Under the pieces are notes generated by a model. That model searched no databases. It was not told the origin of the DNA and worked only from the letters and a program-made list of their open reading frames with translations. The position numbers and the translations under genes are program-made. From the sequence record NC_023719.1: a stretch of 64,000 nt of DNA; one strand, 5' to 3'. The first letter of the stretch is position 1, and each line of letters opens with the position of its first letter. Below are positions 44,585-64,000 of this stretch, one piece after another.

Positions 44585-44660
44585 TTTTTCAAGACTATTT
44601 TAAATATAATTATCATATAACATAGATTTTACAATTAAATTTAAAAGAGGGTGATAGATA

Positions 44661-45278: not shown

Positions 45279-45320
45279 TTGTCAAAATTATTGTTAATGT
45301 GATATAATAAATATATAAGG
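45279..45320 (+). promoter_or_regulatory. sigmaA-like promoter, conserved phage class
   Basis: TTGTCA (45279-45284), 18 bp spacer, TG-A-TATAAT (45303-45308), AAATATATAAGG. Confidence 0.75.
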
Positions 45321-45327
45321 AGAAATA

Positions 45328-45969
45328 ATGATGTATGATTTTGAAGGTATTGAAATTAATATTACAGAAGATGACAAGAGAGTTTTAATCTTAGAAGAAA
45401 TTAGAGAGTTGTCGTCTAAAATAAAAACAAAACAATCACAAATAAATGCGTATGGAAAATTGTTTCATAACATAACTGTAATAGTATACTTAAAAGATAG
45501 TCAATATTTTGCTTTTCGTTTATGTCTCAATGAATCGATGGAAATATCAAATGTAACAATAACTGAAAACCATGCTCTAATGGTGGGTAAAATAGATCAA
45601 ATGATAAGACTTTCTAAAATTGTAGATATGATGTACGTTTATCAAAATGAAGAAATGAATGAAAAATTAGACATTATAAGATGTCTAAGCGAAAAATGCC
45701 CTATCTGTTCTTCTGAAGTATTGAAGAACCGTTTTGGATTAAATCACGCTCGAAAATGTATTAACGGATGTTACACAACTGAATATCGAGAAAATATAAA
45801 ATTATTAAAAATAGATGTGCAGTTGTTTGATGAAGCAGATGACGTATTCTTTATTAAGCACGGTAAAACAACGTTGCAAGATAGAATAAACATAATTAAT
45901 AATCTTTATAGTGAAATTTTATTTTGGAAAGAAAATGACAGGTATTTAGCTAAAATACTAGTGAAATGA
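45328..45969 (+). CDS. Array family member 4
   Basis: CLSEKCPIC...CINGCY...FWKENDRYLAKIL. Confidence 0.85.
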   Translation: MMYDFEGIEINITEDDKRVLILEEIRELSSKIKTKQSQINAYGKLFHNITVIVYLKDSQYFAFRLCLNESMEISNVTITENHALMVGKIDQMIRLSKIVDMMYVYQNEEMNEKLDIIRCLSEKCPICSSEVLKNRFGLNHARKCINGCYTTEYRENIKLLKIDVQLFDEADDVFFIKHGKTTLQDRINIINNLYSEILFWKENDRYLAKILVK

Positions 45970-45979
45970 GTGGTAAATA

Positions 45980-46594
45980 ATGTATGAATTTGGAGATTTA
46001 AAAATAAATGCTACTAAAGGACAAGTTGAGAAATTGGATGACATTAAGAGTGTTAGTGATTCAATTACTACAAGTTTAGTTTATAGATCTACTGATAAAT
46101 TAGTTTTTTTAGTAAAAGTAGCAAAAAACAATCATAAATACACTTTCTTTATGACTTTAAGGGAAGATGAAATAATGAAGATAAGTTTCGAACAACCTCA
46201 ATATACTGATAAAAAATTATTATTTTCACAACTATCGCATGTAATGTTTGAACATTTAATAATTGTTGCAGATTCGTTATACTTAAGTCAAGATGAACAA
46301 TGCAATGATAAACTAAAAGCTATAATTTGTCAAGATTCTTGTCCTATTTGTGATTCAAAATTGGAAAATAACAATGATTTTTCTGTTACTCTTAAATCAT
46401 GTGCAAATAATTGCTATGAAATAAATAAGAGTTTTAATAAAATGTTATTTCAATTAATGATATTTGATAATCTTTATATTAACAACACAGTCACATCTTT
46501 GCAACAGAGAATAGAGTTTGTAGATAAAGTTTATGATGAAATCTTATATTGGAAAAACGGAGAAAGATATCTTGTAAAATTACTTTCAAAATGA
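45980..46594 (+). CDS. Array family member 5
   Basis: CQDSCPIC...CANNCY...YWKNGERYLVKLL. Confidence 0.85.
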   Translation: MYEFGDLKINATKGQVEKLDDIKSVSDSITTSLVYRSTDKLVFLVKVAKNNHKYTFFMTLREDEIMKISFEQPQYTDKKLLFSQLSHVMFEHLIIVADSLYLSQDEQCNDKLKAIICQDSCPICDSKLENNNDFSVTLKSCANNCYEINKSFNKMLFQLMIFDNLYINNTVTSLQQRIEFVDKVYDEILYWKNGERYLVKLLSK

Positions 46595-46607
46595 AGGAGT
46601 TAATATT

Positions 46608-47261
46608 ATGTATTTATACATTTTTAATGATATTAAAATGAGTGTACGTGAAAATATTGCAAATTTACTTGAAGATCTTTCATATTATGACGTTAAAATA
46701 ATTGGAAGCAGCATAAAAAATCTTACTGAGGTTTACGAAGTGAAAGTTACTAATAAAAGTTGTTCAATTTGTTTTAAAATGCATGTTGACAAACATTCAA
46801 GACAATTCTTTGGATTAACAATTCCTTCCAGTAACTATGAAGAAGATAGTTTACTTTATGGAGCTAAAGAATTGGAATTGATATTTTTAGATTTTATTGA
46901 AAAATTAGATTTAGCTGGAAATAAAGAAATAAATGAAATATTAGATACTATAAAGTGTGAAAATGGATTGTGTCCTATTTGTAAATCCAAAGTAAAAATA
47001 CGGATAACACATAGTCACAATACTTATACCTGTCAAAATGAATGTTATATATTAATAACTCGACCTTTAAAAAGTAATAAAGTTAAATCAATACTTGATG
47101 TAATAATTTTTGGAAGCAGTATTTTTGAAAAAGGTGAAGAAAAACCAGACATAGCAAGAATGCCTATGCATTTGAAAATAAACTTTATAGATAGAATCTA
47201 TAGACAAATTAACTATTGGAAAAACGGAGAAAAATATTTAGCGAAAATACTTTCAAAATAA
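46608..47261 (+). CDS. Array family member 6
   Basis: CENGLCPIC...CQNECY...YWKNGEKYLAKIL. Confidence 0.85.
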   Translation: MYLYIFNDIKMSVRENIANLLEDLSYYDVKIIGSSIKNLTEVYEVKVTNKSCSICFKMHVDKHSRQFFGLTIPSSNYEEDSLLYGAKELELIFLDFIEKLDLAGNKEINEILDTIKCENGLCPICKSKVKIRITHSHNTYTCQNECYILITRPLKSNKVKSILDVIIFGSSIFEKGEEKPDIARMPMHLKINFIDRIYRQINYWKNGEKYLAKILSK

Positions 47262-47275
47262 AAGGGGGATACAAA

Positions 47276-47590
47276 ATGAAAAAAATATATTTTAATGTTA
47301 GCAATGGACAAATAGAAGATCCAAATAATAGTTATTTTCCAAGGTATAAAGCGATGTGCCGTTTTGGGAAAATTAAAGAAATATACACTCTCTTTTCTAT
47401 TGATGCAATATTAGAAAACGGACAAGATTGGGTAGATCATCAAATAAAACATGAGTATAAAGATTGGAAGTATTATTCTAACTTAAGAAAAGAATTACAA
47501 AATTTTATTGCACAACCAAAGTTTTGGTTTAAAAGAACAAACTACAAAGAAGGATTAACTAATAAATTTGTATGGATTAAAATTTATTAA
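47276..47590 (+). CDS. Unrelated hypothetical protein inserted in the array
   Basis: ATG after AAAGGGGG; no Cys4 motif. Confidence 0.65.
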   Translation: MKKIYFNVSNGQIEDPNNSYFPRYKAMCRFGKIKEIYTLFSIDAILENGQDWVDHQIKHEYKDWKYYSNLRKELQNFIAQPKFWFKRTNYKEGLTNKFVWIKIY

Positions 47591-47606
47591 AAAGGGTGCG
47601 TTTTAA

Positions 47607-48275
47607 ATGTATAATAAAAAAGAAATAATTTTTTGTGGCGAGTTACTGTTATGTAGTAATGAGATTGAAATAAAATTAAAAGAAATATCAAAAGTTTGTG
47701 ATTTAATGGAGATTAAAGAGTATAGGGCAGAACAGTACAGTGGTATGAACATATTGGCAGTATTTATAGCTGTTACGAAAAAAGATTTTACAGAAAATTT
47801 TATAATGCGTTATCATAAAAAAACTAAAACTATAATAAGCATACAGAGAACTCAAATTGGATTTGAGCAACCTTTCGAAAGACAAACAATAACTAGGCAA
47901 AATAAAGAATTAACAAGTATAATAGACAGAATGCTTATACATGGTGATGAACAAATTAAGAAAAAAATAGAACTCTTCTGGTTTAAGGATGGGTGTCCTA
48001 TTTGCAAATCAAAAGAAATAAAAATCATTGAGGAAGATTATTTTGGTGTAATTGTAAATTGCCAAAATGGATGTTTTCATTTAGACTCATCGAGCTCAGA
48101 GGAATCTATTGATTTTTTAATAAAGTTTTTTGATGAATCACCCTTTTTTTCATTATCTCTAAACTCATCTTTGGACGAGAAGTTAGAAACTATTAATAAA
48201 ATTTATGAAAAAATTAATTATTGGAAAGAAAATGATAGATATTTATTAAGAATGTTAACTAACAAAGGAGAGTAA
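47607..48275 (+). CDS. Array family member 7
   Basis: GCPIC...CQNGCF...YWKENDRYLLRML. Confidence 0.85.
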   Translation: MYNKKEIIFCGELLLCSNEIEIKLKEISKVCDLMEIKEYRAEQYSGMNILAVFIAVTKKDFTENFIMRYHKKTKTIISIQRTQIGFEQPFERQTITRQNKELTSIIDRMLIHGDEQIKKKIELFWFKDGCPICKSKEIKIIEEDYFGVIVNCQNGCFHLDSSSSEESIDFLIKFFDESPFFSLSLNSSLDEKLETINKIYEKINYWKENDRYLLRMLTNKGE

Positions 48276-48279
48276 AGAA

Positions 48280-48951
48280 ATGATTTACGAAAACGTATAT
48301 AAACTTGATTGGTTGGAATTTGGTGCCTCAGTAGATGAGATAGAAAAATTCAATGATATTGTTAGCGTTAGTGATACTATAAAAGTTAAAAAAGTTGAGC
48401 GAAATAGTGAACTAAGATTTTATCTAGTTGAAGCTTCAAATATAGAAAAAACTATAGAATTTGTAATAAAGATATCAGAAAATAACGTAATAGTTAGTAT
48501 AGATGACACTAAACCATTTGATTATGATGAGAAGATTCGCCATTTTGATAGTACAATTATAGCGGTATTGTCAAATATCGCAGACTCTTTATTTTTAGCT
48601 AAAAATAAAGAAATAAAAAAGAAAATTGATATAATTCATTGCATCGATAATCTGTGTCCTATTTGCGGAAATGAGATAAAAAAAGGTATAGAAAAAGAAA
48701 TGTTGAATAGATTTGATTCATTAACATGTAAGAACGGATGTTATGTAGTAGACTTTCGTAATTTTAATTTCGAACATCAAAGTACAGTTGTATCTGTGAC
48801 ATTTTTCCGAAAAAATAAAATTAGTTCAAAATTATTAAGTTCTTTAAGTCGAAGAATGATAACAATAGATCAAATATATGCTAGTATTCAATGGTGGAAA
48901 AGTAATGATAGATACTTAGCAAAAATACTAACAGAAAGTGATGGTAAATAA
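48280..48951 (+). CDS. Array family member 8
   Basis: CIDNLCPIC...CKNGCY...WWKSNDRYLAKIL. Confidence 0.85.
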   Translation: MIYENVYKLDWLEFGASVDEIEKFNDIVSVSDTIKVKKVERNSELRFYLVEASNIEKTIEFVIKISENNVIVSIDDTKPFDYDEKIRHFDSTIIAVLSNIADSLFLAKNKEIKKKIDIIHCIDNLCPICGNEIKKGIEKEMLNRFDSLTCKNGCYVVDFRNFNFEHQSTVVSVTFFRKNKISSKLLSSLSRRMITIDQIYASIQWWKSNDRYLAKILTESDGK

Positions 48952-49612
48952 AATGAGTCATAATGAGGAATTTATATATGAAAATTTTAAAATGCATATG
49001 CCTAAAGGAAGAAAAGAAGAATTAATAAACATTATTGAATTAAGTGACGCTGTTTCAATTGAAAAAAAGCATTATACTCTTGATGATTCACCTGGAAAAA
49101 CAAAAGCATGTTATAGGTTCACAGTAACAAAAAGTGGTGGTGAATTTAAATTTGACATATATGCGGATGATTTATCTCATTATCACCAATCAATTTTGAT
49201 TGAAGAAGCTCGAGACGATGTATTTAAGTTTTATCAATTAGAGTTACAACATATATTAGACTTCATTTATATTTCAAGCAATAACGAATTAAAGAGAAAA
49301 ATTGAGGTCATAAGATGTAAAAATGAAAAGTGTCCTATTTGTGATTCAAAGGTAGATATTGACGATAGAGCGTTTAATGGGAATAATGCTTCATTAAGAT
49401 GTAGTAATGGTTGCTATGTCGTACGCGGCGTCATGGAATCATTAAATAGTTTTTATTTTAATGTAATAATATTTAAAGACGAATCTAGCTATTATAAGTC
49501 TAATGTGGCATTGGAAGAAAAGATAAAAAGAGTTAATGCGATTTATGATAAAATAGAGTATTGGAAAGAGAATGATAAGTACTTAATAAAAATACTTAAA
49601 GAGGATGATTGA
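48938..49612 (+). CDS. Array family member 9
   Basis: CKNEKCPIC...CSNGCY...YWKENDKYLIKIL. Confidence 0.85.
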   Translation: MMVNKMSHNEEFIYENFKMHMPKGRKEELINIIELSDAVSIEKKHYTLDDSPGKTKACYRFTVTKSGGEFKFDIYADDLSHYHQSILIEEARDDVFKFYQLELQHILDFIYISSNNELKRKIEVIRCKNEKCPICDSKVDIDDRAFNGNNASLRCSNGCYVVRGVMESLNSFYFNVIIFKDESSYYKSNVALEEKIKRVNAIYDKIEYWKENDKYLIKILKEDD

Positions 49613-50204
49613 TATGGTAGATATTATCAACTTTGGCGGTATACCCATAAAAGCTGATAGGCAAATGTACAACAAGTTAAGTGATATCTTAGAAAATTGC
49701 GATAGCATTCATACCGAGTTAGAATATCAAAGTTCGTTTGTTACAAGTTATAAAGTAATTATTATAAAAAACAATCAATCAATTGAATTTAATATTTCAA
49801 TGAAACAAGATATGAGCCTATTTATTATTAAAATAAATGACCATGAAAAACATAGATTTAAGATAATGACTATATTATCTATAATATCTAATAAATTATT
49901 ATTTATGAATGATGAAAAAATGATAGGTAAGCTAAAAATAATCTGTTGCAAGCAAGAAAGTAGATGTCCAATTTGTAATTCCGAGTTAAGCAAAAGCATG
50001 TTGAAAGAATGCGTTAATGGCTGTTATTATTTAATGATATATGACAAAACAGTTTTTTATGCGACTGTATTTAATGAAACATTTGATATTTCTGGTGATG
50101 AGTCTACAATTGAAGAAAAAATTAATACAATAAACAAGCTTTACGATAAAATTAATTATTGGAAAGAGAATGATAAATACTTAACGAATATTCTTTCGAA
50201 TTAG
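49605..50204 (+). CDS. Array family member 10
   Basis: RCPIC...CVNGCY...YWKENDKYLTNIL. Confidence 0.85.
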   Translation: MIDMVDIINFGGIPIKADRQMYNKLSDILENCDSIHTELEYQSSFVTSYKVIIIKNNQSIEFNISMKQDMSLFIIKINDHEKHRFKIMTILSIISNKLLFMNDEKMIGKLKIICCKQESRCPICNSELSKSMLKECVNGCYYLMIYDKTVFYATVFNETFDISGDESTIEEKINTINKLYDKINYWKENDKYLTNILSN

Positions 50205-50208
50205 AGAG

Positions 50209-50811
50209 GTGAACTTTGTGTTTGGAAATTTGAAGTTTTATGTATTTAAAGGTATTCTTATGAGAGTTTCGGAAAGAGACAAACTAGGGCTCAAAGAGAT
50301 TATCAAATATAGTGATAAAATCACTATTCAGAAGTCTAAAAGAATAAATTTAACTATTTATCAAGTAACAGCGGAAAGTGGAAAAATAAAAATTCTTTTC
50401 AATTTTGGAGTCAAGAAAATAAGTAGAAAATTTTTCTACGTATCACATGTAAGAAAATTGCAAAATATAGCAAACGAACTTTATCTAGCGAAAGACAAAG
50501 ACTTAAAAAAGAAGGTAAATAGTATAACATGTAAAAATAAAGTTTGCCCTATTTGTGGTTCAAAAGTTGATATTAATAGAGAAATAGGTTGGGTAAATGC
50601 TATATGTATAAATAAATGTTACAGAATACAATTTAGGGCAAAAAACTATACTCATGTTCTTGGATACGATATATTTAGTAAAGTTTACCAGCCAACATAT
50701 CATGATCTATCTATGGAAGAGAGAATTAAAGAAATCAATACTCTCTATAAGAAAATATCTTATTGGAAAGAAGATGAAAAATACCTATTTAAATTACTAG
50801 AGCAAGGGTGA
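50209..50811 (+). CDS. Array family member 11
   Basis: CKNKVCPIC...CINKCY...YWKEDEKYLFKLL. Confidence 0.85.
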   Translation: MNFVFGNLKFYVFKGILMRVSERDKLGLKEIIKYSDKITIQKSKRINLTIYQVTAESGKIKILFNFGVKKISRKFFYVSHVRKLQNIANELYLAKDKDLKKKVNSITCKNKVCPICGSKVDINREIGWVNAICINKCYRIQFRAKNYTHVLGYDIFSKVYQPTYHDLSMEERIKEINTLYKKISYWKEDEKYLFKLLEQG

Positions 50812-50817
50812 TGAAAA

Positions 50818-51459
50818 GTGTTAGAAAGTCTTTTTAGTGATATCAAATTTGAAAACATTAACATAAGAGTTAAAGCATCAGAAGAAGAGAAGCTTAAAGA
50901 TTTAAAGCGTCTATGTAATATAAAAATTACAAAATCAATTATTTACCCTCAATATAAAGATTATCCAACTAGAGAAATTCATCATGTAACAATTAAGAGA
51001 GGAAAGTCAAAAGAGAGATTTAAGCTTATCTTAAACGGTAAAACGAAGAAGATAATTGATGTACAGACAAAATATGATCTTTATTGTTCGACATCAAAAC
51101 AATTTGAGATTTTATTGACTAAAATTTATTTCTCAGAAGATAAAACAATTAAAGATAAAGCTGACATTATAAACTGTAAAAGTGGAAATTGTCCAATCTG
51201 CAATTCTAAAATAAAGAAGAGTATAAATTTCATTGAAAAAATGGTTTGCCCTAATGGCTGCTATAAATTAAGAAGAAGTTTGCTGTATGATACAATCGTT
51301 GGGGTCGATGTAGAGTTTTTTGGTAAGATGCAAAAATATAGAGAATTTAAAGAACATTATGTAGGCTTTAAGTATAAAATTTATCAAATTGAACAAATAT
51401 ATAGTACGATTTCATATTGGAGAGAAGAAAATAGATATTTAATCAAAATGCTTTCATAG
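50818..51459 (+). CDS. Array family member 12
   Basis: CKSGNCPIC...CPNGCY...YWREENRYLIKML. Confidence 0.85.
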   Translation: MLESLFSDIKFENINIRVKASEEEKLKDLKRLCNIKITKSIIYPQYKDYPTREIHHVTIKRGKSKERFKLILNGKTKKIIDVQTKYDLYCSTSKQFEILLTKIYFSEDKTIKDKADIINCKSGNCPICNSKIKKSINFIEKMVCPNGCYKLRRSLLYDTIVGVDVEFFGKMQKYREFKEHYVGFKYKIYQIEQIYSTISYWREENRYLIKMLS

Positions 51460-51470
51460 GAGAGATAACT

Positions 51471-52082
51471 ATGATTAATATTGGCGGAATAGATATTCAT
51501 ACAGATAAAATGAAAGAAAGAAGACTAAGAGAAATTATTGATATGTGCGATTCAATTACTCTTATTAGGATAAGGGAAATAAATTGTCTTTTACAGCATA
51601 AGATGATAGCGAGAAAAAATGATTACTCTATTGAATTCACACTATCAACTAATTTGCAAAACGACTTAATTGTTATACACTGTGATGGTTTTAATTCATC
51701 ATCTGCTAAGGTGTTAATATATATTTTAGAAAAAATCTATCTTTCTCAAAACAAAGAATTGCAAGAGAAATTAAATATTATAAATTGTGAAAACAAGAAA
51801 TGTCCAATTTGTAACTCCGAAATGAGTTCAAAAATACTCGCAAATGGCTTAGAAAAATTGATTTGCAATAATTCTTGTTTTAGGGCAGCAAATTTTAAAG
51901 AAAAATCTATGAAATTCAGTTGTAACGTATATGAAAAACATTTACATGTGAATTTGATAGATTCTACAGAAAGCATAGCTTTTAAAGAACAGAAAATTAA
52001 TGAAGTTTACAATTTAATTAATTACTGGAAAGAACATGATAGATATTTAATAAGAGTATTGTCTCAAGAGGTGAAGATGTAA
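51471..52082 (+). CDS. Array family member 13
   Basis: CENKKCPIC...CNNSCF...YWKEHDRYLIRVL. Confidence 0.85.
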   Translation: MINIGGIDIHTDKMKERRLREIIDMCDSITLIRIREINCLLQHKMIARKNDYSIEFTLSTNLQNDLIVIHCDGFNSSSAKVLIYILEKIYLSQNKELQEKLNIINCENKKCPICNSEMSSKILANGLEKLICNNSCFRAANFKEKSMKFSCNVYEKHLHVNLIDSTESIAFKEQKINEVYNLINYWKEHDRYLIRVLSQEVKM

Positions 52083-52687
52083 TGTTTGATTTTAATGGGA
52101 TAAAAATTAAAACTAATTCAAATAGAGAAAAGAAATTACAAGACATATTAGATAATAGTGATCATATAAAAATCATTAATGAAAAAATAAACAGCTACAC
52201 AGATTACGGCAGTAGGGAATACAATGTGATGGCTTACAAAGGTAGTTTTTCTATTTGGTTTTCATTGCATATCGATAGTGAGAATAGATTAACAGATGTA
52301 ATAGCTGATTTAAGTCATAATGCGCCAGTTACGAGTTTAAATTTCATCGCTGAACGATTATATCTTTCATATAATAAAGACTTTAAAGAAAAATTAGATA
52401 TTATAAGATGTAAAGATAAGAGATGTCCCATTTGTAATTCAAAAATGAATATTGCAACATATTTTGAATTTAATGATGAACTGGCATGTAATAATAGATG
52501 TTTTTACACTTTATTATCAAAAACACACCTAACAAATTTTACATGTAAAATTTTTAATGACAAGAAGAGTGATAAATCATTAAGTCTAACGCTAAAAGAG
52601 AGAATTGAAATGATTGACGAAATATACAACAAAATACTTTATTGGAAAGAAGAAGATAGATATTTAATGAAAATAATGAAAGGATGA
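52082..52687 (+). CDS. Array family member 14
   Basis: CKDKRCPIC...CNNRCF...YWKEEDRYLMKIM. Confidence 0.85.
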   Translation: MFDFNGIKIKTNSNREKKLQDILDNSDHIKIINEKINSYTDYGSREYNVMAYKGSFSIWFSLHIDSENRLTDVIADLSHNAPVTSLNFIAERLYLSYNKDFKEKLDIIRCKDKRCPICNSKMNIATYFEFNDELACNNRCFYTLLSKTHLTNFTCKIFNDKKSDKSLSLTLKERIEMIDEIYNKILYWKEEDRYLMKIMKG

Positions 52688-53319
52688 ATATAATGATAAC
52701 TTTTGGTAGTATAAAATTAGAAGTTAATTCAACGTTAGAGGAAAAATATTTAAAAGAGATTGAGAGTATGTGTGATTCTATAGAAATAAACACTATGAAA
52801 GTAGAACCTACTAACTTAACAGATCATATAGTAAAAGCTACTACAAGAGGATATTCAATTTACTTTACTCTAAGTACAAATTATGATGAATTATTTACAG
52901 TGCAATTTATTAATATTTGTTCAACTAAAAGAGAACAAGAATTAAGTTATATCATACAAGGTATTAAGATTTTTCAAAATAAAGAAATTCAAGAAAAAAT
53001 GAATGTCATTAACTGTGAAAATAATCAATGCCCTATATGTAATTCAGAAATCAAAAATGATCCATATACGTTTAGTGGTTATAGAAAAGTTTGTAAAAAT
53101 GGTTGCTATCTTATTGCTATAAATGAAGATTTCTCCCCAAGAGGTGTAATGATATTCGATGAAACTATTGAACTAGTGAATTCTAATTTATATAATCTAA
53201 TACCCGCTGATAAAGATATAGATAGTTTTGTTAAAATCTTAAACAAAATATATGACAAAACGATGTACTTAAAAGAAAATGATAGATATTTAGCTAAAAT
53301 AATGGAGGGAAACAAGTGA
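52684..53319 (+). CDS. Array family member 15
   Basis: CENNQCPIC...CKNGCY...YLKENDRYLAKIM. Confidence 0.85.
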   Translation: MNIMITFGSIKLEVNSTLEEKYLKEIESMCDSIEINTMKVEPTNLTDHIVKATTRGYSIYFTLSTNYDELFTVQFINICSTKREQELSYIIQGIKIFQNKEIQEKMNVINCENNQCPICNSEIKNDPYTFSGYRKVCKNGCYLIAINEDFSPRGVMIFDETIELVNSNLYNLIPADKDIDSFVKILNKIYDKTMYLKENDRYLAKIMEGNK

Positions 53320-53945: not shown

Positions 53946-53948
53946 TGA

Positions 53949-55758: not shown

Positions 55759-56325
55759 ATGATTAATATAATACTTAATAATAGAGAAAAAGAGAAGATT
55801 AGAGAACTTGAAGAAATAAGCGATACAATGAAAACAATACAAATTGGAAAAAACGAATATGAAGTAAAAGTTGTAAAAAACAAAACTACTATTACCTTTA
55901 CTATCGTGACAGATATAATGACTAATGGAATAACAGAAATTGTTTACAAAAATCTATCTGAATTCAAGCTTAGAAATTTAGTTTGTGTTATAGAAGATCT
56001 TTATTTACCCAATGATAAAAACTTACAAGAAAAACTACATATTATTTATTGTGTAGATGACGTTTGTCCTATATGCGGTATGAAGTTAAAGCAAATATAT
56101 TCTGATAAAAAAGAATGTAAAAATAAATGTTACGAAGTACTTATTGTAAGAAATGGATGTAAGATAAATTTTCTTGTTAAAATCTTCAAAACTCAAGAAT
56201 ACGAAGTTTATCCGACAAGGGCTTTAAAAGAAAAAATAGAAATCGTTAATCAAATATGTTATCAAATAAATTTTTGGAAAAATAATGATAGATACTTAAT
56301 GAGACTGATAGAAGGAGAAAACTAA
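55759..56325 (+). CDS. Array family member 20
   Basis: CVDDVCPIC...CKNKCY...FWKNNDRYLMRLI. Confidence 0.85.
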   Translation: MINIILNNREKEKIRELEEISDTMKTIQIGKNEYEVKVVKNKTTITFTIVTDIMTNGITEIVYKNLSEFKLRNLVCVIEDLYLPNDKNLQEKLHIIYCVDDVCPICGMKLKQIYSDKKECKNKCYEVLIVRNGCKINFLVKIFKTQEYEVYPTRALKEKIEIVNQICYQINFWKNNDRYLMRLIEGEN

Positions 56326-56327
56326 AT

Positions 56328-56900
56328 ATGTTGCTTGATATAAAACTTCGTGTATCAGAAATTGAATCAGTAAAAGAACTAATAGCAATTAGTGATCAAA
56401 TTAACATCTCTAAAGAAGAAAAAAATTTGTATAAAATGATAGCAACAAGAGGAAAAAATACTATAAAAGTTACAATTGAAACAAATGAGAATAAAATGAT
56501 TTATTCAATGAAAAATGAGCAGCCATATGCAGAAAAAATACATGATATAGAGGAAATAGTTGAGTATTTATACGTAAACGACAATCAAGAATTACAGAGT
56601 AAGTTAGATGCTATATTGTGTAAAAACAATCTATGTCCAATATGCAATTCAGAACTAGAATTAGACATATATGCTGTTGCCGAAGTAATAAGCTGCAAAA
56701 ATAAATGCTATTCGGTAATAGATCTAACGGGAAGATTTAAACTATATTTTCATGTAGTTATATTTGGAGAAAACATCTCTGCCTCTCCACATGATAAAAT
56801 ACTTAACAAGGTCGATACGGTTAATCAATTATATGACAAGATAAATCTCTGGAAAGATAACGATAACTACTTAACAAAAATGTTAATGGAGGGTAACTAG
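56328..56900 (+). CDS. Array family member 21
   Basis: CKNNLCPIC...CKNKCY...LWKDNDNYLTKML. Confidence 0.85.
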   Translation: MLLDIKLRVSEIESVKELIAISDQINISKEEKNLYKMIATRGKNTIKVTIETNENKMIYSMKNEQPYAEKIHDIEEIVEYLYVNDNQELQSKLDAILCKNNLCPICNSELELDIYAVAEVISCKNKCYSVIDLTGRFKLYFHVVIFGENISASPHDKILNKVDTVNQLYDKINLWKDNDNYLTKMLMEGN

Positions 56901-57448
56901 TGTTCATAGAAGCTGGTAGTAGAATAAAAGCAACGATGCAAAAAATCATAGACATTAGTGACGACATGGAAATATCTGTTGAAACGGGTGAAATATACAA
57001 AATAAGAGTTACAAAAGGTAAGGCTGTCATTGACTTCAAAGCTTTAGTGAATAAAGATAATGAATTAAAAGATATACGTTATAAGTTTCCATTTAATAGA
57101 CTAAAAAATTTAGAAACTATCATAGAAGACTTGTACTTACAAGATGATAAAGAACTAAGTAATAAACTAGAAAAAATCTATTGTTCAAATAACATATGCC
57201 CTATATGTAATTCAAAACTAGAAAGAACTCGTGTAAGAGCAAATTGTGAAAACGGTTGCTATTCTTTATCTCCACATGATTATCTCAAATTTCACTTTAC
57301 TCTTTGGGTATTTGATAACAAATATGATGTTTGTCCAGATTTAAGCTTAGAAACTAAAACAATCACTATTAATGAAATATGTAGTCAAATAGACTACTGG
57401 AAAGAAAATGATAATTACTTAGCAGAAATAATAAAAGGGGAAAATTAA
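56900..57448 (+). CDS. Array family member 22
   Basis: CSNNICPIC...CENGCY...YWKENDNYLAEII. Confidence 0.85.
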   Translation: MFIEAGSRIKATMQKIIDISDDMEISVETGEIYKIRVTKGKAVIDFKALVNKDNELKDIRYKFPFNRLKNLETIIEDLYLQDDKELSNKLEKIYCSNNICPICNSKLERTRVRANCENGCYSLSPHDYLKFHFTLWVFDNKYDVCPDLSLETKTITINEICSQIDYWKENDNYLAEIIKGEN

Positions 57449-57449
57449 C

Positions 57450-57995
57450 ATGTTTGTAGAAGCTGTAGGTAATGATAAAGAAAAACTGCAAGAAATTATA
57501 GACATCAGCGATAAAATAGAAGTCTCTAAAGACGATGAAACATATATAGTAAAAGCTACTAAAGGTGACACACTCATTAAATTTGCAATCACGGCAGATG
57601 AAAATAATAAATTAAAAAGAGTACACTATAAAATACCATTTACATTTAATAAACACACAAATTTAGCAAATATCATAGAAGACTTATATTTACCAAATGA
57701 TAAAGATTTACAAGATAAACTACAAGTAATCTATGGCGTAAATAGAATATGCCCTATATGTAATTCACAATTAGAAAAAAACTATAGATTAGAATGTGAA
57801 AACAACTGCTATTCGTTTTTATCAATCAATAGTCTCAAACTATACTTTAATATCAAAATATTTGACACTAAATACAGAGTAGATCAAACATCCAGCTTAG
57901 ACGATAAAATAAATACTATCAATGAAATATACAACCAATTAAACTATTGGAAAGAAGATGACAGATACTTAACAGAATTCATCAAACGAAACTAA
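57450..57995 (+). CDS. Array family member 23
   Basis: ICPIC...CENNCY...YWKEDDRYLTEFI. Confidence 0.85.
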   Translation: MFVEAVGNDKEKLQEIIDISDKIEVSKDDETYIVKATKGDTLIKFAITADENNKLKRVHYKIPFTFNKHTNLANIIEDLYLPNDKDLQDKLQVIYGVNRICPICNSQLEKNYRLECENNCYSFLSINSLKLYFNIKIFDTKYRVDQTSSLDDKINTINEIYNQLNYWKEDDRYLTEFIKRN

Positions 57996-57996
57996 T

Positions 57997-58037
57997 TTTA
58001 CAAAAATTGCATATTTTGATATAATTAATATATAAGG
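57997..58037 (+). promoter_or_regulatory. sigmaA-like promoter, conserved phage class
   Basis: TTTACA (57997-58002), 17 bp spacer, TG-A-TATAAT (58020-58025), TAATATATAAGG. Confidence 0.8.
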
Positions 58038-58053
58038 AGAGGAGAAAATAACT

Positions 58054-58650
58054 ATGCCTATTATTAGAATTAAACAATATGAAATCATTACTAATTCACA
58101 TAAAGAAACAGAAAGACTTAAAGAAATCATAGGATTAAGCAAAAAGAACTTCACTATAGTAAAAGATAAACTAACATATAACATAAGAATTAAACTAAAA
58201 AAATCATTCTTACAATTCACAATCAAAACAAACAGTGAAAATGTAATTACTAAAATATCCTATAGTAACGGAAAATCAAATCGTTCAGTAAATAAAATAC
58301 TGCACGTATTAAACAATATCATAGAAGATATTAACTTAGTTACTAATGAAGGTCTAAGGGATAAACTAGAACTTATAAGATGTCATGATAATCTTTGTCC
58401 TATTTGTAGTTCTCCACTAGAAAAAATAAGCAGCTTTGAAAGACATTGCAAAAATGATTGCTATAGTATCTGGTATTCAACAAAATATCATGAAATAGAA
58501 GTATCTGTAACAATATTTGAAAAGAAACTAAAAGCATTTGGATCAAACTCGATGAAAACAAAAATCAACACTATAAACGCTATATGTAATCAAATCTTTT
58601 ACTGGAAACAAAGCGATAATTATCTTGCAAAACTTATATTGCAAGATTAA
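58054..58650 (+). CDS. Array family member 24
   Basis: CHDNLCPIC...CKNDCY...YWKQSDNYLAKLI. Confidence 0.85.
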   Translation: MPIIRIKQYEIITNSHKETERLKEIIGLSKKNFTIVKDKLTYNIRIKLKKSFLQFTIKTNSENVITKISYSNGKSNRSVNKILHVLNNIIEDINLVTNEGLRDKLELIRCHDNLCPICSSPLEKISSFERHCKNDCYSIWYSTKYHEIEVSVTIFEKKLKAFGSNSMKTKINTINAICNQIFYWKQSDNYLAKLILQD

Positions 58651-58667
58651 GAAAGGAGAAAACTATT

Positions 58668-59261
58668 ATGTTAACTACTAGAATTAAACAATTTGAATTC
58701 AATACTACTCCTACCGAAGACATGAAGCTATTTGACATCCTTAGTATAAGTGATAACGTATCTATTACTAAAGACGGCTTAGTTTATCATGTCACTTCTC
58801 AAAAAGATGATACTACTGTAGAATTTTCAATAGTAACAAATACAAAAAACTACATTATTAACATCATATATGATAAACAAAAACCTCTTTTTTTATCAAA
58901 TCAAATTTTAGTACCTCTAATTAACATAGCGGAAGACTATGCTTTAGACACTAATAAAGAACTACAAGAAAAACTAACAACTATTTTATGTAAAGATAAT
59001 TTTTGTCCAATATGTAACTCTCAACTCATAGAAGGAAAAAGACACGAATTAAAATGTAATAACAACTGTTATAGTATAAGCTATTCAAATTACACCCGTA
59101 CTATAGATCTAGAAGCAACTATCTTTAATGAAGAATTCCAAGCATACGGAGATCAATCAATAAAAGATAAAATAGAAGCTATAAATCTTATATATGAACA
59201 AATCTCACACTGGAAAGAAAACGATAAATACTTAACAAAAATACTAAAAGGAGAAAACTAA
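58668..59261 (+). CDS. Array family member 25
   Basis: CKDNFCPIC...CNNNCY...HWKENDKYLTKIL. Confidence 0.85.
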   Translation: MLTTRIKQFEFNTTPTEDMKLFDILSISDNVSITKDGLVYHVTSQKDDTTVEFSIVTNTKNYIINIIYDKQKPLFLSNQILVPLINIAEDYALDTNKELQEKLTTILCKDNFCPICNSQLIEGKRHELKCNNNCYSISYSNYTRTIDLEATIFNEEFQAYGDQSIKDKIEAINLIYEQISHWKENDKYLTKILKGEN

Positions 59262-59262
59262 T

Positions 59263-59856
59263 ATGGACGTTATCGAAATTAAACAATTTGAGATAAATAC
59301 TTCACAAGAAGAATACAAAATACTTAGTGATATCCTTAATATAAGCAATAATTTTTCTATTACAAAAGAAAATTCAACTTACTATATTACATCTCAAAAA
59401 GAAAACGCTTGCATAAAATTTTCACTAGTAATAAATCAATATAATCATATAGCTAAAGTTGTATATAACGAAGGAAAACAAAAATACAACATACATGCAA
59501 TAGCAAGAACCCTAACTGACATAGCAGAAGATTACACTATAGCTACTAATAAAAAAATAAAACATAAACTATCAATAATAAAATCTGAAAATAATAAATG
59601 CCCTATTTGTAATTCTCAACTAACAATGCTATCAGAAAGTGAATTAAAATGTAAAAACAACTGCTACAACATATTCAATTCAAACTACAGCGGGTCAATT
59701 GACTTTGTAGTAACAATCTTTGGTAAAGAGCACTCAATATATGGAGACTATTCAATAAAATCTAAAGTAAGACTCATCAACAAAATTTATAATCATATCT
59801 CCAACTGGAAAAAGAACGAAAAGTATCTAGCAAAAATACTAAAAGGAGAATACTAA
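59263..59856 (+). CDS. Array family member 26
   Basis: KCPIC...CKNNCY...NWKKNEKYLAKIL. Confidence 0.85.
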   Translation: MDVIEIKQFEINTSQEEYKILSDILNISNNFSITKENSTYYITSQKENACIKFSLVINQYNHIAKVVYNEGKQKYNIHAIARTLTDIAEDYTIATNKKIKHKLSIIKSENNKCPICNSQLTMLSESELKCKNNCYNIFNSNYSGSIDFVVTIFGKEHSIYGDYSIKSKVRLINKIYNHISNWKKNEKYLAKILKGEY

Positions 59857-59857
59857 T

Positions 59858-60448
59858 ATGCTCTCTATCAAAATTAAACAATTTGAAATAAACACTACTC
59901 CAAAAGAATATGATCTACTTAGAGATATCATTAAAGCAAGTGATAAAATATCTATCACAAAAGAAAATCTAACTTACTATGTCACATCTCAAAAAGATGA
60001 AACAATTATAGAATTCTCAATCATAATAAATCCAAGAAACGATATTATCAACATCCTCTATGATAAAAAGAAATCTCCCTTCCCAATATATAAAGTCGTG
60101 CGAGCTCTAACAAACATAACAGAAGATCTCCATCTAGAAACTAATAAAAAATTATACAATAAACTAAAAATCATACAATGCGAAGATCACAAATGCCCTA
60201 TATGCGGATCTGAACTCTTAATATTACAAAATGAATCAAAATGCAAAAATAAATGTTATAGCGTACACTACTCAACATCTAGCTACGCTATAGATTTAGA
60301 AGTAAACATCTTTAATGAAGAATTCACAGCATACGGAAATCAATCAATAGAAAACAAAATAGATACTATAAATCTTATCTGTAATCAAATCTCTTACTGG
60401 AAAGAAGATGACAAATACTTAACGAAAATACTAAAAGGAGAATACTAA
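59858..60448 (+). CDS. Array family member 27
   Basis: CEDHKCPIC...CKNKCY...YWKEDDKYLTKIL. Confidence 0.85.
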   Translation: MLSIKIKQFEINTTPKEYDLLRDIIKASDKISITKENLTYYVTSQKDETIIEFSIIINPRNDIINILYDKKKSPFPIYKVVRALTNITEDLHLETNKKLYNKLKIIQCEDHKCPICGSELLILQNESKCKNKCYSVHYSTSSYAIDLEVNIFNEEFTAYGNQSIENKIDTINLICNQISYWKEDDKYLTKILKGEY

Positions 60449-60449
60449 C

Positions 60450-61001
60450 ATGCTCAATATAAAAACTACAAAAGAAGAACAAGAAAAACTACAAGAAATA
60501 ACAAACATCTGTGATAAAATAGAAACAACTAAAATCTCAAGCGACAAATACAAAATAAAAGCTACAAAAGGAAACATCACTATAAACTTCTCAATTGTGA
60601 CAAATCAAGATAACGGAATAAGATTCGTCAATTATAAATCACCCTTCAACAAACTAAAAAATCTACAACAAATCATAGAAGATCTATATATACCCAACGA
60701 TAAAAAACTACAAAATCAACTAACCACTATATATAGCGAAAACAATCTTTGCCCTATATGTAACTCAAAACTAAATACTCCCTCAACTAAAATAAAAAAA
60801 TGCAACAATAAATGCTATTTGCTTTTCTTAACTTCACGAGACGAACACAAAATACATTTCAATATTAGAATATTCGATGATTTCTTTAAAATTCAGGAAG
60901 ATCAAAACTTATATAAAAAAATAAACATCATAAACACTATATATAATCAAATCTCTCACTGGAAAGAAAACGAAAATTATATAGCAAAACTACTAAAATA
61001 A
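60450..61001 (+). CDS. Array family member 28
   Basis: LCPIC...CNNKCY...HWKENENYIAKLL. Confidence 0.85.
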   Translation: MLNIKTTKEEQEKLQEITNICDKIETTKISSDKYKIKATKGNITINFSIVTNQDNGIRFVNYKSPFNKLKNLQQIIEDLYIPNDKKLQNQLTTIYSENNLCPICNSKLNTPSTKIKKCNNKCYLLFLTSRDEHKIHFNIRIFDDFFKIQEDQNLYKKINIINTIYNQISHWKENENYIAKLLK

Positions 61002-61006
61002 AACAC

Positions 61007-61035
61007 AAACTATCTTATAATAAGGTAGTTTTTTT
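61007..61035 (+). terminator. Intrinsic terminator closing the array
   Basis: AAACTATCTTA-taa-TAAGGTAGTTT-TTTT. Confidence 0.7.
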
Positions 61036-61299
61036 ACTCTCAACAACTAAGTTTACTATAGTAAACACGTACGCGCGAGCAACACTTTATCTTCATTTCT
61101 AACCTCATTTTTTCAAAAAACACTAAAATATCTATAGTGTAAATAAACGTGGAACAGTAGTGTAAATAGAACACTAAATAATAATCGTTTGGTAGGTGTA
61201 AATCGTGAAAAATTCCGTATAAATCAATAGAAAATCCACCTCAAAAGATCAAACCAGATCAAACAAGGCTGGTGTAATAAGTGTCAACAACGAGAGAGA

Positions 61300-61765
61300 A
61301 CAACAAAAAAGACTTCAAAAACAGGAGAAATGTAAAAAAAACTACATAAAAAATAAAAAACTTCTATATATATAAAAAAGAATTATGTAAAAGATAAAAA
61401 AAACATATATACAAACTAATCAATATATATATAGAAAACTAGCATAAACATAAATAAACTTATATATAAAAAAGAAAGCATATATATAAGAAACTACTAT
61501 AAAACATATATAGAAACATTCGTAAAACTCATATATAAAAATTACTATATAAAACATGAAACGATATATAAACAACATTCAAAAAATATCATAATAAATC
61601 ATAAACATATATATAGAAAAACATAAAACAATCATATAAGAAAGACTCAAAGAAACATGAAATCATACAAGAAAACATATATAGAAAACATTCATAAAAC
61701 TACATAAAAGAGAGAAATCATAAACATATAAGAGAGAAATCATGCAAGAAAACATGAAATCAGAG
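61300..61765. repeat. A/C-rich degenerate repeat tract (ATATATAGAAAAC and GAAATCAT units)
   Basis: Multiple CATATATAGAAA(A)C and GAAATCAT(A/G)CAAGAAAACAT variants; no long ORF. Confidence 0.6.
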
Positions 61766-61936
61766 CTCGCGCAACACGGTGACTCTGTCTGAATACGCTG
61801 TTTTGAACACTTCTAGATCAAAAAGCAAGCGCAGATAAAAGCAGATGAAGGAAATTGGAGAGAAAAGTGAGTGAGTGTGATGGAAAATTGCTGTAAATAG
61901 CATATAAAAGCGTGTCAAATTGGTGAAAGCAAATTA

Positions 61937-61966
61937 AAAGAACTATAGAATTTGCTATAGTTCTTT
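61937..61966. repeat. 12-bp perfect inverted repeat
   Basis: AAAGAACTATAG-aatttg-CTATAGTTCTTT. Confidence 0.85.
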
Positions 61967-61986
61967 AGAGATAGATATTGAATTTG

Positions 61987-62070
61987 ATGTAGTATAGATC
62001 AATTAATAAGAAAATTCTATATATAGAAAAGAGAAGAAAGTTTGTTTTTATTAATTGATCTATACTACAT
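61987..62070. repeat. 23-bp perfect inverted repeat enclosing the palindrome TTCTATATATAGAA
   Basis: ATGTAGTATAGATCAATTAATAA (61987-62009) / TTATTAATTGATCTATACTACAT (62048-62070); palindrome at 62015-62028. Confidence 0.9.
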
Positions 62071-62230
62071 TAGGGGGAAAATGGAAAATTCTTAATCCAA
62101 GTAAGAAAGTAGGTATCCCCCTATGTAGGTTTTTACAACAAAATATGGAGGAATGTTGTAAAATGAAAAACTATTCAACAGTAATGTATCGCTAACTATA
62201 TATTAGCGGCTGCCGTAGCAGCAAGAAAAG

Positions 62231-62315
62231 TTCTATAGCTCTATATATAGAAGATTAGAACTCTTTTTGCTGCCCGCAGATCATTTAGTGATCTTCTATA
62301 TATAGAGCTATAGAA
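62231..62315. repeat. 25-bp perfect inverted repeat containing CTATATATAG
   Basis: TTCTATAGCTCTATATATAGAAGAT (62231-62255) / ATCTTCTATATATAGAGCTATAGAA (62291-62315). Confidence 0.9.
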
Positions 62316-62581
62316 ATAGAAAAAATAGAAAAGCTCTATATATAGATCATTCTTTTAGATCGTTCCTTATTGTAGCTTCACTTAATAAAGATAAGAAAGT
62401 GTTCCCGTACTCTTTCTTCTATTCCGGAATTAATAATATTATAAGAGGATAGCATTAGATTTTTAACACTTTTAAATTATTTCCCGATTATTTCCCAAAC
62501 ATTGTAATAGTATATGTAATGAAGAGAATTGAGATAGAGTATAAAGATGAAAAGAGCGACAACGTGATTGTTTAAAAATAG

Positions 62582-62621
62582 TTTACAAAGTTATTAGAAT
62601 ATGATATAATAAATATATAAG
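62582..62621 (+). promoter_or_regulatory. sigmaA-like promoter, conserved phage class
   Basis: TTTACA (62582-62587), 17 bp spacer, TG-A-TATAAT (62605-62610), AAATATATAAG. Confidence 0.8.
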
Positions 62622-62645
62622 AACAAATATAGGGAGAAGGAAACG

Positions 62646-63014
62646 ATGGACAGAAAAGAAGAGTTGATTAGTCAGATCGAAGAAGATTTATTGATATTGA
62701 CATTATCTATGGGGATAAAGGTATTGAAGAATGACGATAGTTTTAATGTATTAGATCATAAGAATTATCGATTATTCGCTATATATATAGAAGAAGCTAA
62801 GATAGGTTATAGATATAAAGTGTTATTAAATTATGAAGGTAAGTTAGGAAATATAAACATTAGGGGTTCTCATAATATAGTAGAAAGTTATGATGAAGAA
62901 GTTGTATATAGTAAAGTAAAGAAGATGATAGACGCTATAGTTGAAAATGATGGAACGGTGAAGAGGACGTATATTGATGATGGATTCGAAGTTAAGAGAT
63001 CTGGTGAAAGTTGA
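62646..63014 (+). CDS. Hypothetical protein, family 3 (tentative)
   Basis: First gene after the promoter; GGGAGAAGG RBS. Confidence 0.7.
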   Translation: MDRKEELISQIEEDLLILTLSMGIKVLKNDDSFNVLDHKNYRLFAIYIEEAKIGYRYKVLLNYEGKLGNINIRGSHNIVESYDEEVVYSKVKKMIDAIVENDGTVKRTYIDDGFEVKRSGES

Positions 63015-63264
63015 ATTAGTATCTTTAGCATTAGTAAAAGAAATATATATAAAAGAAAATAGTAATCTTATAGATGTATATGATTCAAATGATTGGAGAA
63101 TTTTTGCTATTTATTATGATAAGCAAGCGGATCTATATATAGTAAGAACTATTATGAAGTGGAAACGTAAAGAATGGATGCGTAATACCGTGATAATTTC
63201 TAAAACCGCAGATATAGAAGAGACGTTGAGAAATTCAAAGAGAGCTATACGAGCTCTTATGTGA
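62974..63264 (+). CDS. Hypothetical protein, family 3
   Basis: KLRDLVKVELVSLALVKEI N-terminal pattern. Confidence 0.65.
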   Translation: MMMDSKLRDLVKVELVSLALVKEIYIKENSNLIDVYDSNDWRIFAIYYDKQADLYIVRTIMKWKRKEWMRNTVIISKTADIEETLRNSKRAIRALM

Positions 63265-63273
63265 GGTGAGTTT

Positions 63274-63585
63274 GTGGATAGAATAAGAGAATATATAGAT
63301 AGTGAGATAGTAGGGTGTGCCTTGATGGGTAATTTCCCCGAGTATAAGTGTAATTATCTTTATTGTTCGAGTAATCTTAGTCTTAATGTATGGATCGGCG
63401 AAATTTTTTATTTTGAGATTAGTGAAGATAGAGAGGGTGGATATATTGTTTCTCCAAATATGTGGAATTTAAAGACATATGTAAAGATGCGGTATATGGC
63501 TGATGAGATTAGAGTAGATACTGAAGAAGAAGTGATGAATATAGCTAGGCACTTTCTTAGGTTGAAGGGAGAAAGAGTCGTATGA
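63274..63585 (+). CDS. Hypothetical protein, family 3
   Basis: RIREYIDSEIVGCALM; GTG start after GAGGTGAG. Confidence 0.65.
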   Translation: MDRIREYIDSEIVGCALMGNFPEYKCNYLYCSSNLSLNVWIGEIFYFEISEDREGGYIVSPNMWNLKTYVKMRYMADEIRVDTEEEVMNIARHFLRLKGERVV

Positions 63586-63911
63586 GTAGTTATGATAGAA
63601 TTCATGAGTGGTTAAAAGAATCATTAGTAGGTTTATCTTTAATTAGAAGTGTAGAGTTTGAGTACGTAAGTCATATAGCTTTTGGATCTAATAAAGAGAT
63701 AAGAAGCATTTATATAAATTGTGAAAGTTTGCTGTTTTTAAATTTAGTTATATATGAAATGAGTGACAAGTGTATATTTCAGTGTAGTAATGGTTTTCGT
63801 TTTAGGCACGATAAAGAAAATCATTATATATCGACTGAAGATTTTGATATATGTATTGAGAGGTTAGAAGAATGGATAGAAGAGATAATGCAAGTAAAGA
63901 TAATACTATAA
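63582..63911 (+). CDS. Hypothetical protein, family 3
   Basis: RIHEWLKESLVGLSLIRSVEFEY. Confidence 0.7.
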   Translation: MSSYDRIHEWLKESLVGLSLIRSVEFEYVSHIAFGSNKEIRSIYINCESLLFLNLVIYEMSDKCIFQCSNGFRFRHDKENHYISTEDFDICIERLEEWIEEIMQVKIIL

Positions 63912-64000
63912 GCAACTATACTAGAGTAGTGGAACGTTTAAAAGAATTATTAGTGATGTTATCTTTATTTAGAGAGGTAGAGATTGAATATCATTATTAT
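63908..64000 (+). CDS. 5' part of a further family 3 paralog running off the window (ATA or GTG start)
   Basis: ISNYTRVVERLKELLVMLSLFREVEIEY aligns with MSSYDRIHEWLKESLVGLSLIRSVEFEY of 63582. Confidence 0.55.
   Translation, partial: MSNYTRVVERLKELLVMLSLFREVEIEYHYY

Follow-up and report, generated by a model that had tools for sequence, protein, structure and literature searches.

Why should the base composition of one DNA strand invert abruptly beside a non-coding gap when the genes on either side of it lie on the same strand? The locus that raises this question is in Bacillus phage G (NC_023719/JN638751, 497,513 bp), to our knowledge the sole cultured megaphage. The window analysed is a stretch of 64,000 nucleotides (nt) corresponding to genome bases 310,001-374,000, and positions given below are those of the window unless they are identified as genome coordinates. 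The locus begins within a tandem array of 28 plus-strand paralogs (gp444-gp474), of which it takes in the 3' half, and continues through a non-coding gap of 1.6 kb (61,002-62,645, between gp474 and gp475) to the small genes that open the next block, from gp475 onward. A preliminary description of the window had proposed that strand composition drifts along the array and switches near 61.8 kb, and that this marks either a bidirectional replication origin or a genome end. We find that the shift is mutational and local, and that the gap is a candidate origin lying elsewhere than the literature places one. A 2025 phage G paper shows a GC-skew track and terms the 349-386 kb region of the genome a 'cryptic zone' (PMC12484599), and a single origin prediction has been published, in which Ori-Finder puts 'OriC' at the beginning of the assembly (PMC12484599); no account of the strand-bias switch was found in the phage G literature.

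Strand composition along the array and across the gap

The plus-strand GC (guanine-cytosine) skew in 1-kb windows is +0.2 to +0.3 across 42-57 kb, then passes through 0.00, -0.09, -0.17 and -0.32 between 57 and 61 kb, and stands at +0.34 and +0.52 past 62 kb. With 300-nt windows the trough reaches -0.44 (60.6-60.9 kb) and a plateau of +0.55 to +0.63 is attained beyond 62.55 kb. On the plus strand C>G thus gives way to G>C, the polarity seen at a bidirectional origin. The AT (adenine-thymine) skew runs opposite to the GC skew, with a peak of +0.47 inside the gap (61.2-61.5 kb) and values near zero on the right, and the A+C content drops from 66% (61002-61780) to 49% (61780-61990). The five hand counts on 60-nt lines that first drew attention to the region (45361, G13/C5; 60661, G3/C13; 60721, G4/C14; 62821, G12/C3; 63481, G19/C3) are all exact.

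The paralogs follow the same course one by one, with GC skew falling from +0.24 (gp465) to -0.38 (gp474) at a steady GC content of about 26%, and the skew tracks gene order closely (Spearman rho -0.99 for the last ten copies and -0.80 for all 28). The baseline portion of the array, gp444-gp467, has GC skews of +0.14 to +0.34 and an A+C content of 48-56%, and there is a weak trend toward the gap among the first 21 paralogs (rho -0.55, p=0.01). The gradient along the paralogs stands as it had been described, with one correction: its steep part is confined to the last seven (~5 kb) within the ~15 kb over which the skew had been said to reverse.

At the scale of the genome the raw cumulative GC skew climbs with little interruption, 573 of the 624 long open reading frames (ORFs) being on the plus strand, and the locus appears only as a local dip (minimum at genome 371703, window 61703). 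When the mean slope is removed, the cumulative curves have their global minima at the right edge of the gap, at genome 372,503 (window 62503) for GC skew and 372,660 for keto skew (G+T versus A+C). The extremum that the preliminary description expected near 61.8 kb is therefore present, as a local minimum of the raw curve and as a global one only after detrending. The cumulative GC skew at third codon positions (GC3), calculated for plus-strand genes only, also has its minimum at 372,660, with a range of 1081 compared to 361 +/- 78 in gene-order shuffles; this curve falls slowly from 0 to 372 kb and rises steeply from 372.6 to 487 kb. The site is unique in the genome. Scanning with 4-kb arms and the measure S = G/(A+G) - C/(C+T), the jump at the gap is the largest (0.67, about 7 standard deviations (SD), with an SD of 0.093), and the second largest, beside the capsid gene, is 0.33. 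The A+C content of 1-kb windows is 50.2 +/- 2.7% over the genome, and the eight highest windows (59.3-66.5%) are consecutive, at 367.5-372 kb, with five of the lowest (42.4-43.6%) directly across the gap at 373.0-375.5 kb.

The magnitude of the bias is graded with distance from the site, as in mitochondrial-type gradients. Logistic-exponential fits with a far-field value of ~0.20 give likelihood-ratio statistics of 45-76 and, when extrapolated to the switch, C/(C+T) of 0.65 on the left and 0.064 on the right, and G/(A+G) of 0.007 and 0.395 respectively, with decay lengths of ~3 kb on the left and 10-20 kb on the right. Among 145 plus-strand genes at genome 372.6-477 kb, S declines with distance from the gap (rho -0.54, p=2e-12) and returns to baseline after ~70 kb. 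The switch is therefore local, extending ~3 kb to the left and 10-70 kb to the right, and is not a chromosome-wide V, because the raw cumulative skew rises on both sides of it.

Elsewhere in the genome, four small plus-strand genes at 474,485-476,326 have C/(C+T) of 0.38-0.60 and a mildly lowered G/(A+G), and the third-largest upward jump follows them at ~477 kb. We considered a second switch site at 474.5-477 kb and rejected it, the shift there being weak, mainly in C, and limited to these four small genes.

The shift at silent and non-coding sites

Two-fold synonymous sites separate the flanks clearly from the remainder of the genome. Plus-strand genes genome-wide have C/(C+T) of 0.214 and G/(A+G) of 0.184, and the array up to gp467 has the same values (0.217 and 0.176). 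From gp468 to gp474, C/(C+T) is 0.32, 0.38, 0.33, 0.37, 0.44, 0.45 and 0.51, with G/(A+G) at 0.00-0.08, and right after the gap the values are 0.00-0.17 and 0.22-0.55 respectively. Ten plus-strand genes in the genome carry the left-flank signature, and six of these are within the gp468-gp474 stretch. Persistence at fourfold-degenerate sites had been named in advance as the observation on which the gradient would stand or fall, and it persists there: G/(A+G), which is 0.176 in the rest of the array, falls to 0.073 on the left (p=3e-4) and rises to 0.265 on the right (p=7e-4), and C/(C+T) on the right is 0.080 compared to 0.148 (p=0.001). The direction agrees in all of the contrasts with the array baseline, and three of the four are significant.

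The form of the change is also simple. At third codon positions gp470-474 differ from gp447-464 by -7.2 points in G and +7.6 in A, and by -9.4 in T and +9.0 in C, with smaller matched shifts in the same direction at codon positions 1 and 2. The left-hand shift is thus a one-for-one exchange of G for A and of T for C, at constant GC and purine percentages, and it is reversed on the right; it consists of transitions only with purine content unchanged, as in mitochondrial-type gradients. Protein composition on the left is altered, with fewer D, G and V residues and more K, N, I, T and Q. Non-coding DNA is shifted too, with an A+C content of 66% to the left of ~61.78 kb and 51% in the right half of the gap. 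Because the shift is present at silent sites and in non-coding DNA, it is mutational and does not reflect a choice of amino acids or codons, and the preliminary proposal of a mutational effect is supported at two-fold, four-fold and non-coding sites alike. Minus-strand genes genome-wide, read in their own orientation, have C/(C+T) of 0.316 (compared to 0.214 for plus-strand genes) and G/(A+G) of 0.134; they share the plus-strand G/T bias, so that the asymmetry is a property of the DNA strand, whichever strand is coding.

Two other sources of the composition were considered and rejected. The left-flank genes retain ATA (0.56), AGA (0.74), GGA (0.54) and GTA (0.62), and raise CTA from 0.12 to 0.37 by synonymous T to C change at the first codon position. 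The major capsid protein (MCP)-like gene and three genes of similar signature prefer GGT, GTT, ACT, TCT and CGT, and avoid ATA and AGA. Translational codon selection is ruled out, in that the left-flank codons are unlike those of the MCP-like gene and codon positions 1 and 2 and non-coding DNA shift as well. Inheritance of a common composition among young duplicates is ruled out by gp469 and gp474, both of which are shifted even though their synonymous sites are randomised (27 of 62 codons identical, compared to 30.4 expected), and the gradient spans two paralog clades. The paralogs can accordingly be used as a ruler, as had been suggested.

The gap-proximal paralogs (55,195-61,001) have the shortest terminal branches (gp473, 0.28; gp471, 0.46; gp469, 0.56; median 1.4), which suggests that the array has been extended through recent duplication on its gap-proximal side.

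A candidate initiation zone and its alternatives

The interpretation that we favor, tentatively and as slightly less than an even proposition, is that replication initiates in the gap and leaves displaced strands that persist for long, as happens in mitochondrial DNA; the gap may instead be a chromosome end or some other kind of site at which single strands become exposed. An origin is the best-supported explanation, and not a proven one, for the anatomy of the gap, the polarity of the switch, the transition-only exchange, its presence at silent and non-coding sites, its dependence on distance and its uniqueness in the genome, all of which are observed directly. The gap would be a fixed site at which strands are repeatedly exposed single-stranded in opposite directions. 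Leading-strand synthesis would start in or near the palindromes and A-rich repeats and run both ways, with rightward synthesis displacing the plus strand and leftward synthesis the minus strand, i.e. the lagging-strand template on each side. On the exposed strand, cytosine would become uracil (C to T) and adenine would become hypoxanthine (A to G), so that, in plus-strand terms, the right flank would show C to T and A to G and the left flank G to A and T to C. We infer single-strand deamination as the chemistry and replication initiation as the cause of the exposure, although in a variant of this idea the bias may come from the errors of the polymerase that initiates synthesis. In mitochondrial DNA these two transitions make up a gradient tied to replication (PMC8565317), and chloroplast origins have been located by means of deamination gradients (PMC2695485).

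The preliminary description had attributed the decay with distance to local single-strand exposure, and both the exponential fits and the correlation along the paralogs (rho -0.99) fit this. If displacement synthesis or bubble opening often stopped early, exposure would fall approximately exponentially, with decay over ~3 kb on one side and 10-20 kb on the other. The left arm could be short because it would run head-on into transcription of the array, the right arm being co-directional with almost all of the genes. That phage G initiates through long-lived displacement loops opening both ways from one internal site is a proposition we regard as possible, but doubtful.

The anatomy of the gap (Table 1) is origin-like in combining an AT-rich tract with repeated putative binding sites (four copies of TCTATATATAGA and three of GTGTAAAT). 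The 12-mer TCTATATATAGA occurs four times in the 497.5 kb, always in the gap, with ~0.3 occurrences expected from base frequencies. The 10-mer AGTGTAAATA has three copies in the genome (two on the plus strand and one on the minus strand), and both plus-strand copies are in the gap. The A-rich tract is 59.6% A, 22.2% T, 10.9% C and 7.3% G (A+C 70.5%), and the GC content of its core (61350-61649) is 15.7%. The hairpin cluster contains perfect inverted repeats with arms of 25-26 nt and folds as single-stranded DNA with -79.6 kcal/mol (z = -13 relative to shuffles), and the midpoint of the A+C profile (50%) lies within it.

Several observations weigh against an origin. There is no replichore-wide inversion of the raw skew, the reversed arm being ~5 kb and the plus-strand skew positive everywhere else; the detrended GC3 curve has two regimes (372.6-487 kb and the rest) instead of a symmetric V, and no terminus-like opposite skew extremum was found. 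On the right, G/(A+G) is plateau-like with a sharp drop near genome 404.4 kb, and does not decay smoothly. Host-type DnaA boxes are not enriched and none is in the gap, and no initiator, helicase or polymerase gene adjoins it. Neither of two distant relatives identified by a pattern search, an IMG/VR contig and a 476-kb metagenomic contig with short YWKENDRYL-tail genes, shows a homologous gap or a reversed flank, although both are too remote from phage G to serve as a test of the gap's conservation. The IMG/VR contig (IMGVR_UViG_3300042923_001459, reverse complement 43,330-43,680) does have a 350-bp intergenic region with about nine TCTATAGATAG / TCTATAGAA iterons, the motif of which resembles a shorter phage G palindrome, but this cluster is situated between an NlpC/P60 gene and two large GNAT genes and has no extended switch. 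Thus, of the earlier proposal that the switch marks a bidirectional origin, the polarity matches and the expected extent does not; the origin itself we infer.

Second to an origin, and in our view unlikely, we rank the explanation that the gap is a chromosome end, a terminal-repeat boundary or a packaging start, with exposure arising from end-initiated synthesis or terminal-repeat duplication. The gap borders a small-ORFan, promoter-rich block resembling the host-takeover modules in the terminal repeats of other phages. Packaged phage G DNA is reported to be ~626 kb compared to a unique length of 498-500 kb (PMC12484599, PMC5646251), and the redundancy of ~126-128 kb is close both to the distance from the gap to the end of the record (125.7 kb) and to the block of above-average GC3 skew at 372.66-486.7 kb. 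The depth of a soil-metagenome contig is also higher to the right of 62.5 kb (7.6) than to the left (5.0-6.7), although the ratio of ~1.4 is neither 1 nor 2 and the coverage is low. Polarity is the greater difficulty, in that simple 5' resection would expose the minus strand on the right and give the opposite sign; the observed polarity fits only end-primed strand displacement, and no protein-primed polymerase has been reported for phage G. A long terminal repeat would place the left flank in the interior of the virion DNA and leave its A/C enrichment unexplained, and the boundary of the 13-kb terminal repeat of Bacillus phage SPO1 has no switch in A+C or GC skew. The 2025 study puts the ends near 59 kb of the record and rejects long terminal redundancy (PMC12484599). 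The genome-end alternative raised at the outset thus retains the correct polarity only if ends start strand-displacement synthesis, and the position of the published ends and the example of SPO1 argue against it. If the gap were nonetheless a chromosome end, it would bear on the dispute over the phage G termini and on the ~126-kb excess of packaged DNA.

The published ends map to ~58.5-60.7 kb of the genome, within a cluster of eight tRNA genes. The terminal repeat reported with them is 127 bp long, the amount by which two of the reported assembly lengths differ (499,946 and 499,819; PMC12484599). The largest SPAdes k-mer is also 127, a size that assemblers commonly use. Because of their position in the tRNA cluster, and because 127 bp is both a k-mer size and this difference in length, the published ends may be an assembly break and not true ends. 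No internal repeat of 121-127 bp links the gap locus to the published 'terminal repeat'.

Considerably less probable again is a transcriptional cause, either non-template exposure or transcription-coupled repair, with strong early transcription diverging rightward from the gap and antisense transcription running leftward through the end of the array. Divergent transcription would yield an origin-like polarity, the strong promoter at 62582 opens the right-hand block, and in a distant megaphage relative the block of YWKENDRYL small genes is likewise G/T-rich and directly follows a terminator. However, the bias follows neither gene orientation nor promoter density. Between 372.6 and 477 kb of the genome, mean S drops from 0.24 to -0.02 as promoters become denser (2.3 to 10.3 per 10 kb), and promoter-adjacent genes are not more biased. 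The minus-strand genes gp505 and gp506 share the plus-strand bias, with an own-orientation C/(C+T) of 0.469 compared to 0.309 for other minus-strand genes (p=3e-4). On the left, gp470-474 are biased the other way despite the strong sense promoter in front of them, and the gradient is already under way before that promoter is reached. No canonical leftward promoter was found in or near the gap, and the minus-strand terminator-like hairpin (61966-61937) would stop leftward transcripts from the palindromes.

Least probable is that no local mutational process is at work, and that codon usage or mRNA composition has been under selection or the region is a mosaic of blocks from differently skewed genomes. 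In favor of this, highly expressed genes also prefer C-ending two-fold and A-ending purine codons (0.69 and 0.07 in the MCP-like gene), G/(A+G) has step-like drops at ~56.9 kb (window) and ~404.4 kb (genome) that are partly a floor effect, and the last paralogs, on the shortest branches, are the youngest duplicates. Against it, the left flank keeps or raises non-optimal codons (ATA, AGA, GGA, GTA and CTA; ATA is near zero in the highly expressed pattern), the exchange extends to codon positions 1 and 2 and to non-coding DNA, and in the right block the shift is likewise not toward optimal codons but away from them. In addition, the change in C/(C+T) and in whole-gene skew is gradual and monotonic through both paralog clades, and the randomised synonymous sites of gp469 and gp474 indicate that their shared composition is not inherited.

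Features of the locus, relatives and known systems

Table 1. Features at the phage G locus (window coordinates)
Feature	Position	Strand	Remarks
Paralog array gp444-gp467 (Cys4 + YWKENDRYL tail)	42560..56900	+	Compositional baseline
Last seven paralogs, gp468-gp474	56900..61001	+	Plus-strand A/C enrichment rising toward the gap
Sigma-A-type promoter (TTTACA, 17 nt, TGnTATAAT) before gp470	57997..58025	+	11/12 consensus, extended -10
AT-rich hairpin and T-run, probable terminator of the array transcript	61010..61040	+	Read from the sequence; unscored by the consensus scan
Three direct copies of GTGTAAAT (two as TAGTGTAAATA)	about 61135..61205	+	
A-rich degenerate repeat tract, 440 nt	61320..61760	+	~11 ATATATA(G)A cores, weak 22-nt periodicity
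Raw-skew switch point	61700..61800	.	End of A/C-rich tract, then short GC-rich segment, then G-rich purine tract
Hairpin/palindrome cluster	61937..62346	.	Four TCTATATATAGA copies: 62016, 62240, 62295, 62335
Minus-strand terminator-like hairpin	61966-61937	-	
Strong sigma-A-type promoter, extended -10, for gp475 and downstream genes	62582..62610	+	
Small genes gp475-gp478	62646..64000	+	Start of G/T-enriched block extending past the window; C/(C+T) 0.00-0.17, G/(A+G) 0.22-0.50

There are no credible ORFs in the gap and no tRNA genes in the window. Rfam gives no family for the gap, with only sub-threshold microRNA-like hairpin matches to the palindromes, and Pfam finds nothing significant in the gap-flanking proteins; a RepD-like_N match in gp474 (E=0.054) was dismissed.

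The gradient crosses the promoter before gp470 unchanged, and the two detrended skew minima (GC at 62503 and keto at 62660) flank the promoter at 62582. The genome has 75 plus-strand sigma-A promoters with an extended -10, and 62 of these are at genome 367,997-476,457 (108 kb), 61 being to the right of the gap with the one at 367,997 making 62. They have the form TT[GT]ACA-like, 17 nt, TGnTATAAT with a conserved downstream AAATATA, and are densest at 440-470 kb (10-12 per 10 kb). The gap is the left border of a ~105-115-kb block of small ORFan genes, and it looks like the left border of the early region.

The minus-strand gene gp506 (genome 385,879-387,376), annotated as a 'partition protein', belongs to the actin-like ParM/Alp7A family (ALP_N, E=2e-22; MreB-like_C, E=1e-18) and is followed by gp505, a 129-amino-acid partner, and the pair, 14 kb rightward of the gap, resembles a segregation module of the actin type. 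The possibility that the gap repeats are the centromere of this partition gene was rejected, the region upstream of gp506 having no gap palindrome.

No phage records related to phage G were found besides phage G itself. A 2023 soil metagenome contains a phage that is ~1% divergent from laboratory phage G over 58,500-64,000, the gap among them, and lacks 3 and 10 nt at two places in the A-rich tract; phages closely related to phage G thus occur in the environment. The contigs of three other metagenomic runs covered little of this region. The 476-kb contig (RCUH01000011.1; 475,962 bp, 27% GC), alongside which we note RCUU01000001.1, encodes dozens of proteins of ~100 amino acids ending in YWKENDRYL, and the small-gene block is G/T-rich (GC skew 0.3-0.46) and starts directly after a capsid-like gene and a terminator. 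The short YWKENDRYL genes of the relatives indicate that the tail of the paralogs exists as a stand-alone small protein family. In the IMG/VR contig the same ~50-nt promoter element is repeated many times.

The locus provides a concrete and experimentally testable origin candidate, and a phage example of a strand-bias gradient as steep as those in mitochondria, with a measurable effect on the proteins encoded by a tandem gene family. Should the switch prove to stem from replication initiation, the silent-site test would be a cheap origin finder for megaphages known only from metagenomes. If displacement loops are formed as proposed, then a mitochondrial-style gradient is reshaping the amino acids of neighboring proteins in a 0.5-Mb double-stranded DNA phage, and such gradients could both locate origins and report on the mechanics of initiation in uncultured megaphages from sequence alone.

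The bidirectional origins of bacteria, plasmids and phages share with the phage G gap the C>G to G>C polarity at a non-coding, AT-rich, repeat-bearing region, and the cumulative-skew minimum at the site, which in phage G is seen after detrending. They differ in that the reversed arm in phage G is ~5 kb and the forward excess ~10-70 kb, and neither spans a whole replichore, that the amplitude is far higher (GC3 skew of about -0.8 to +0.8), that the gap lacks DnaA boxes, and that the raw skew stays positive to either side, a consequence of nearly all phage G genes lying on one strand. The fixed-end junctions of phages such as T7 and SPO1 are similar in being non-coding, short-repeat regions that open an early promoter-rich block, but the SPO1 boundary has no switch and the published phage G ends are elsewhere. 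At the ColE1 origin, polymerase I leaves a mutation footprint in the first kilobases that decays with distance, an experimental record of the errors of an initiating polymerase; the phage G signature likewise decays with distance from its candidate origin, but is an evolutionary equilibrium of composition with opposite signs on the two sides. Further counterparts are the gradients of vertebrate mitochondrial DNA (PMC8565317) and chloroplast DNA (PMC2695485), which show the same G to A and T to C changes graded with distance from an origin, and which are likewise visible at synonymous sites and in base composition with a large amplitude. The mitochondrial gradient is linear over the whole molecule, whereas that of phage G extends with opposite signs to both sides of a single site, within a 0.5-Mb double-stranded DNA genome with a DnaB/primase/PolIII-type replisome, and decays roughly exponentially over kilobases.

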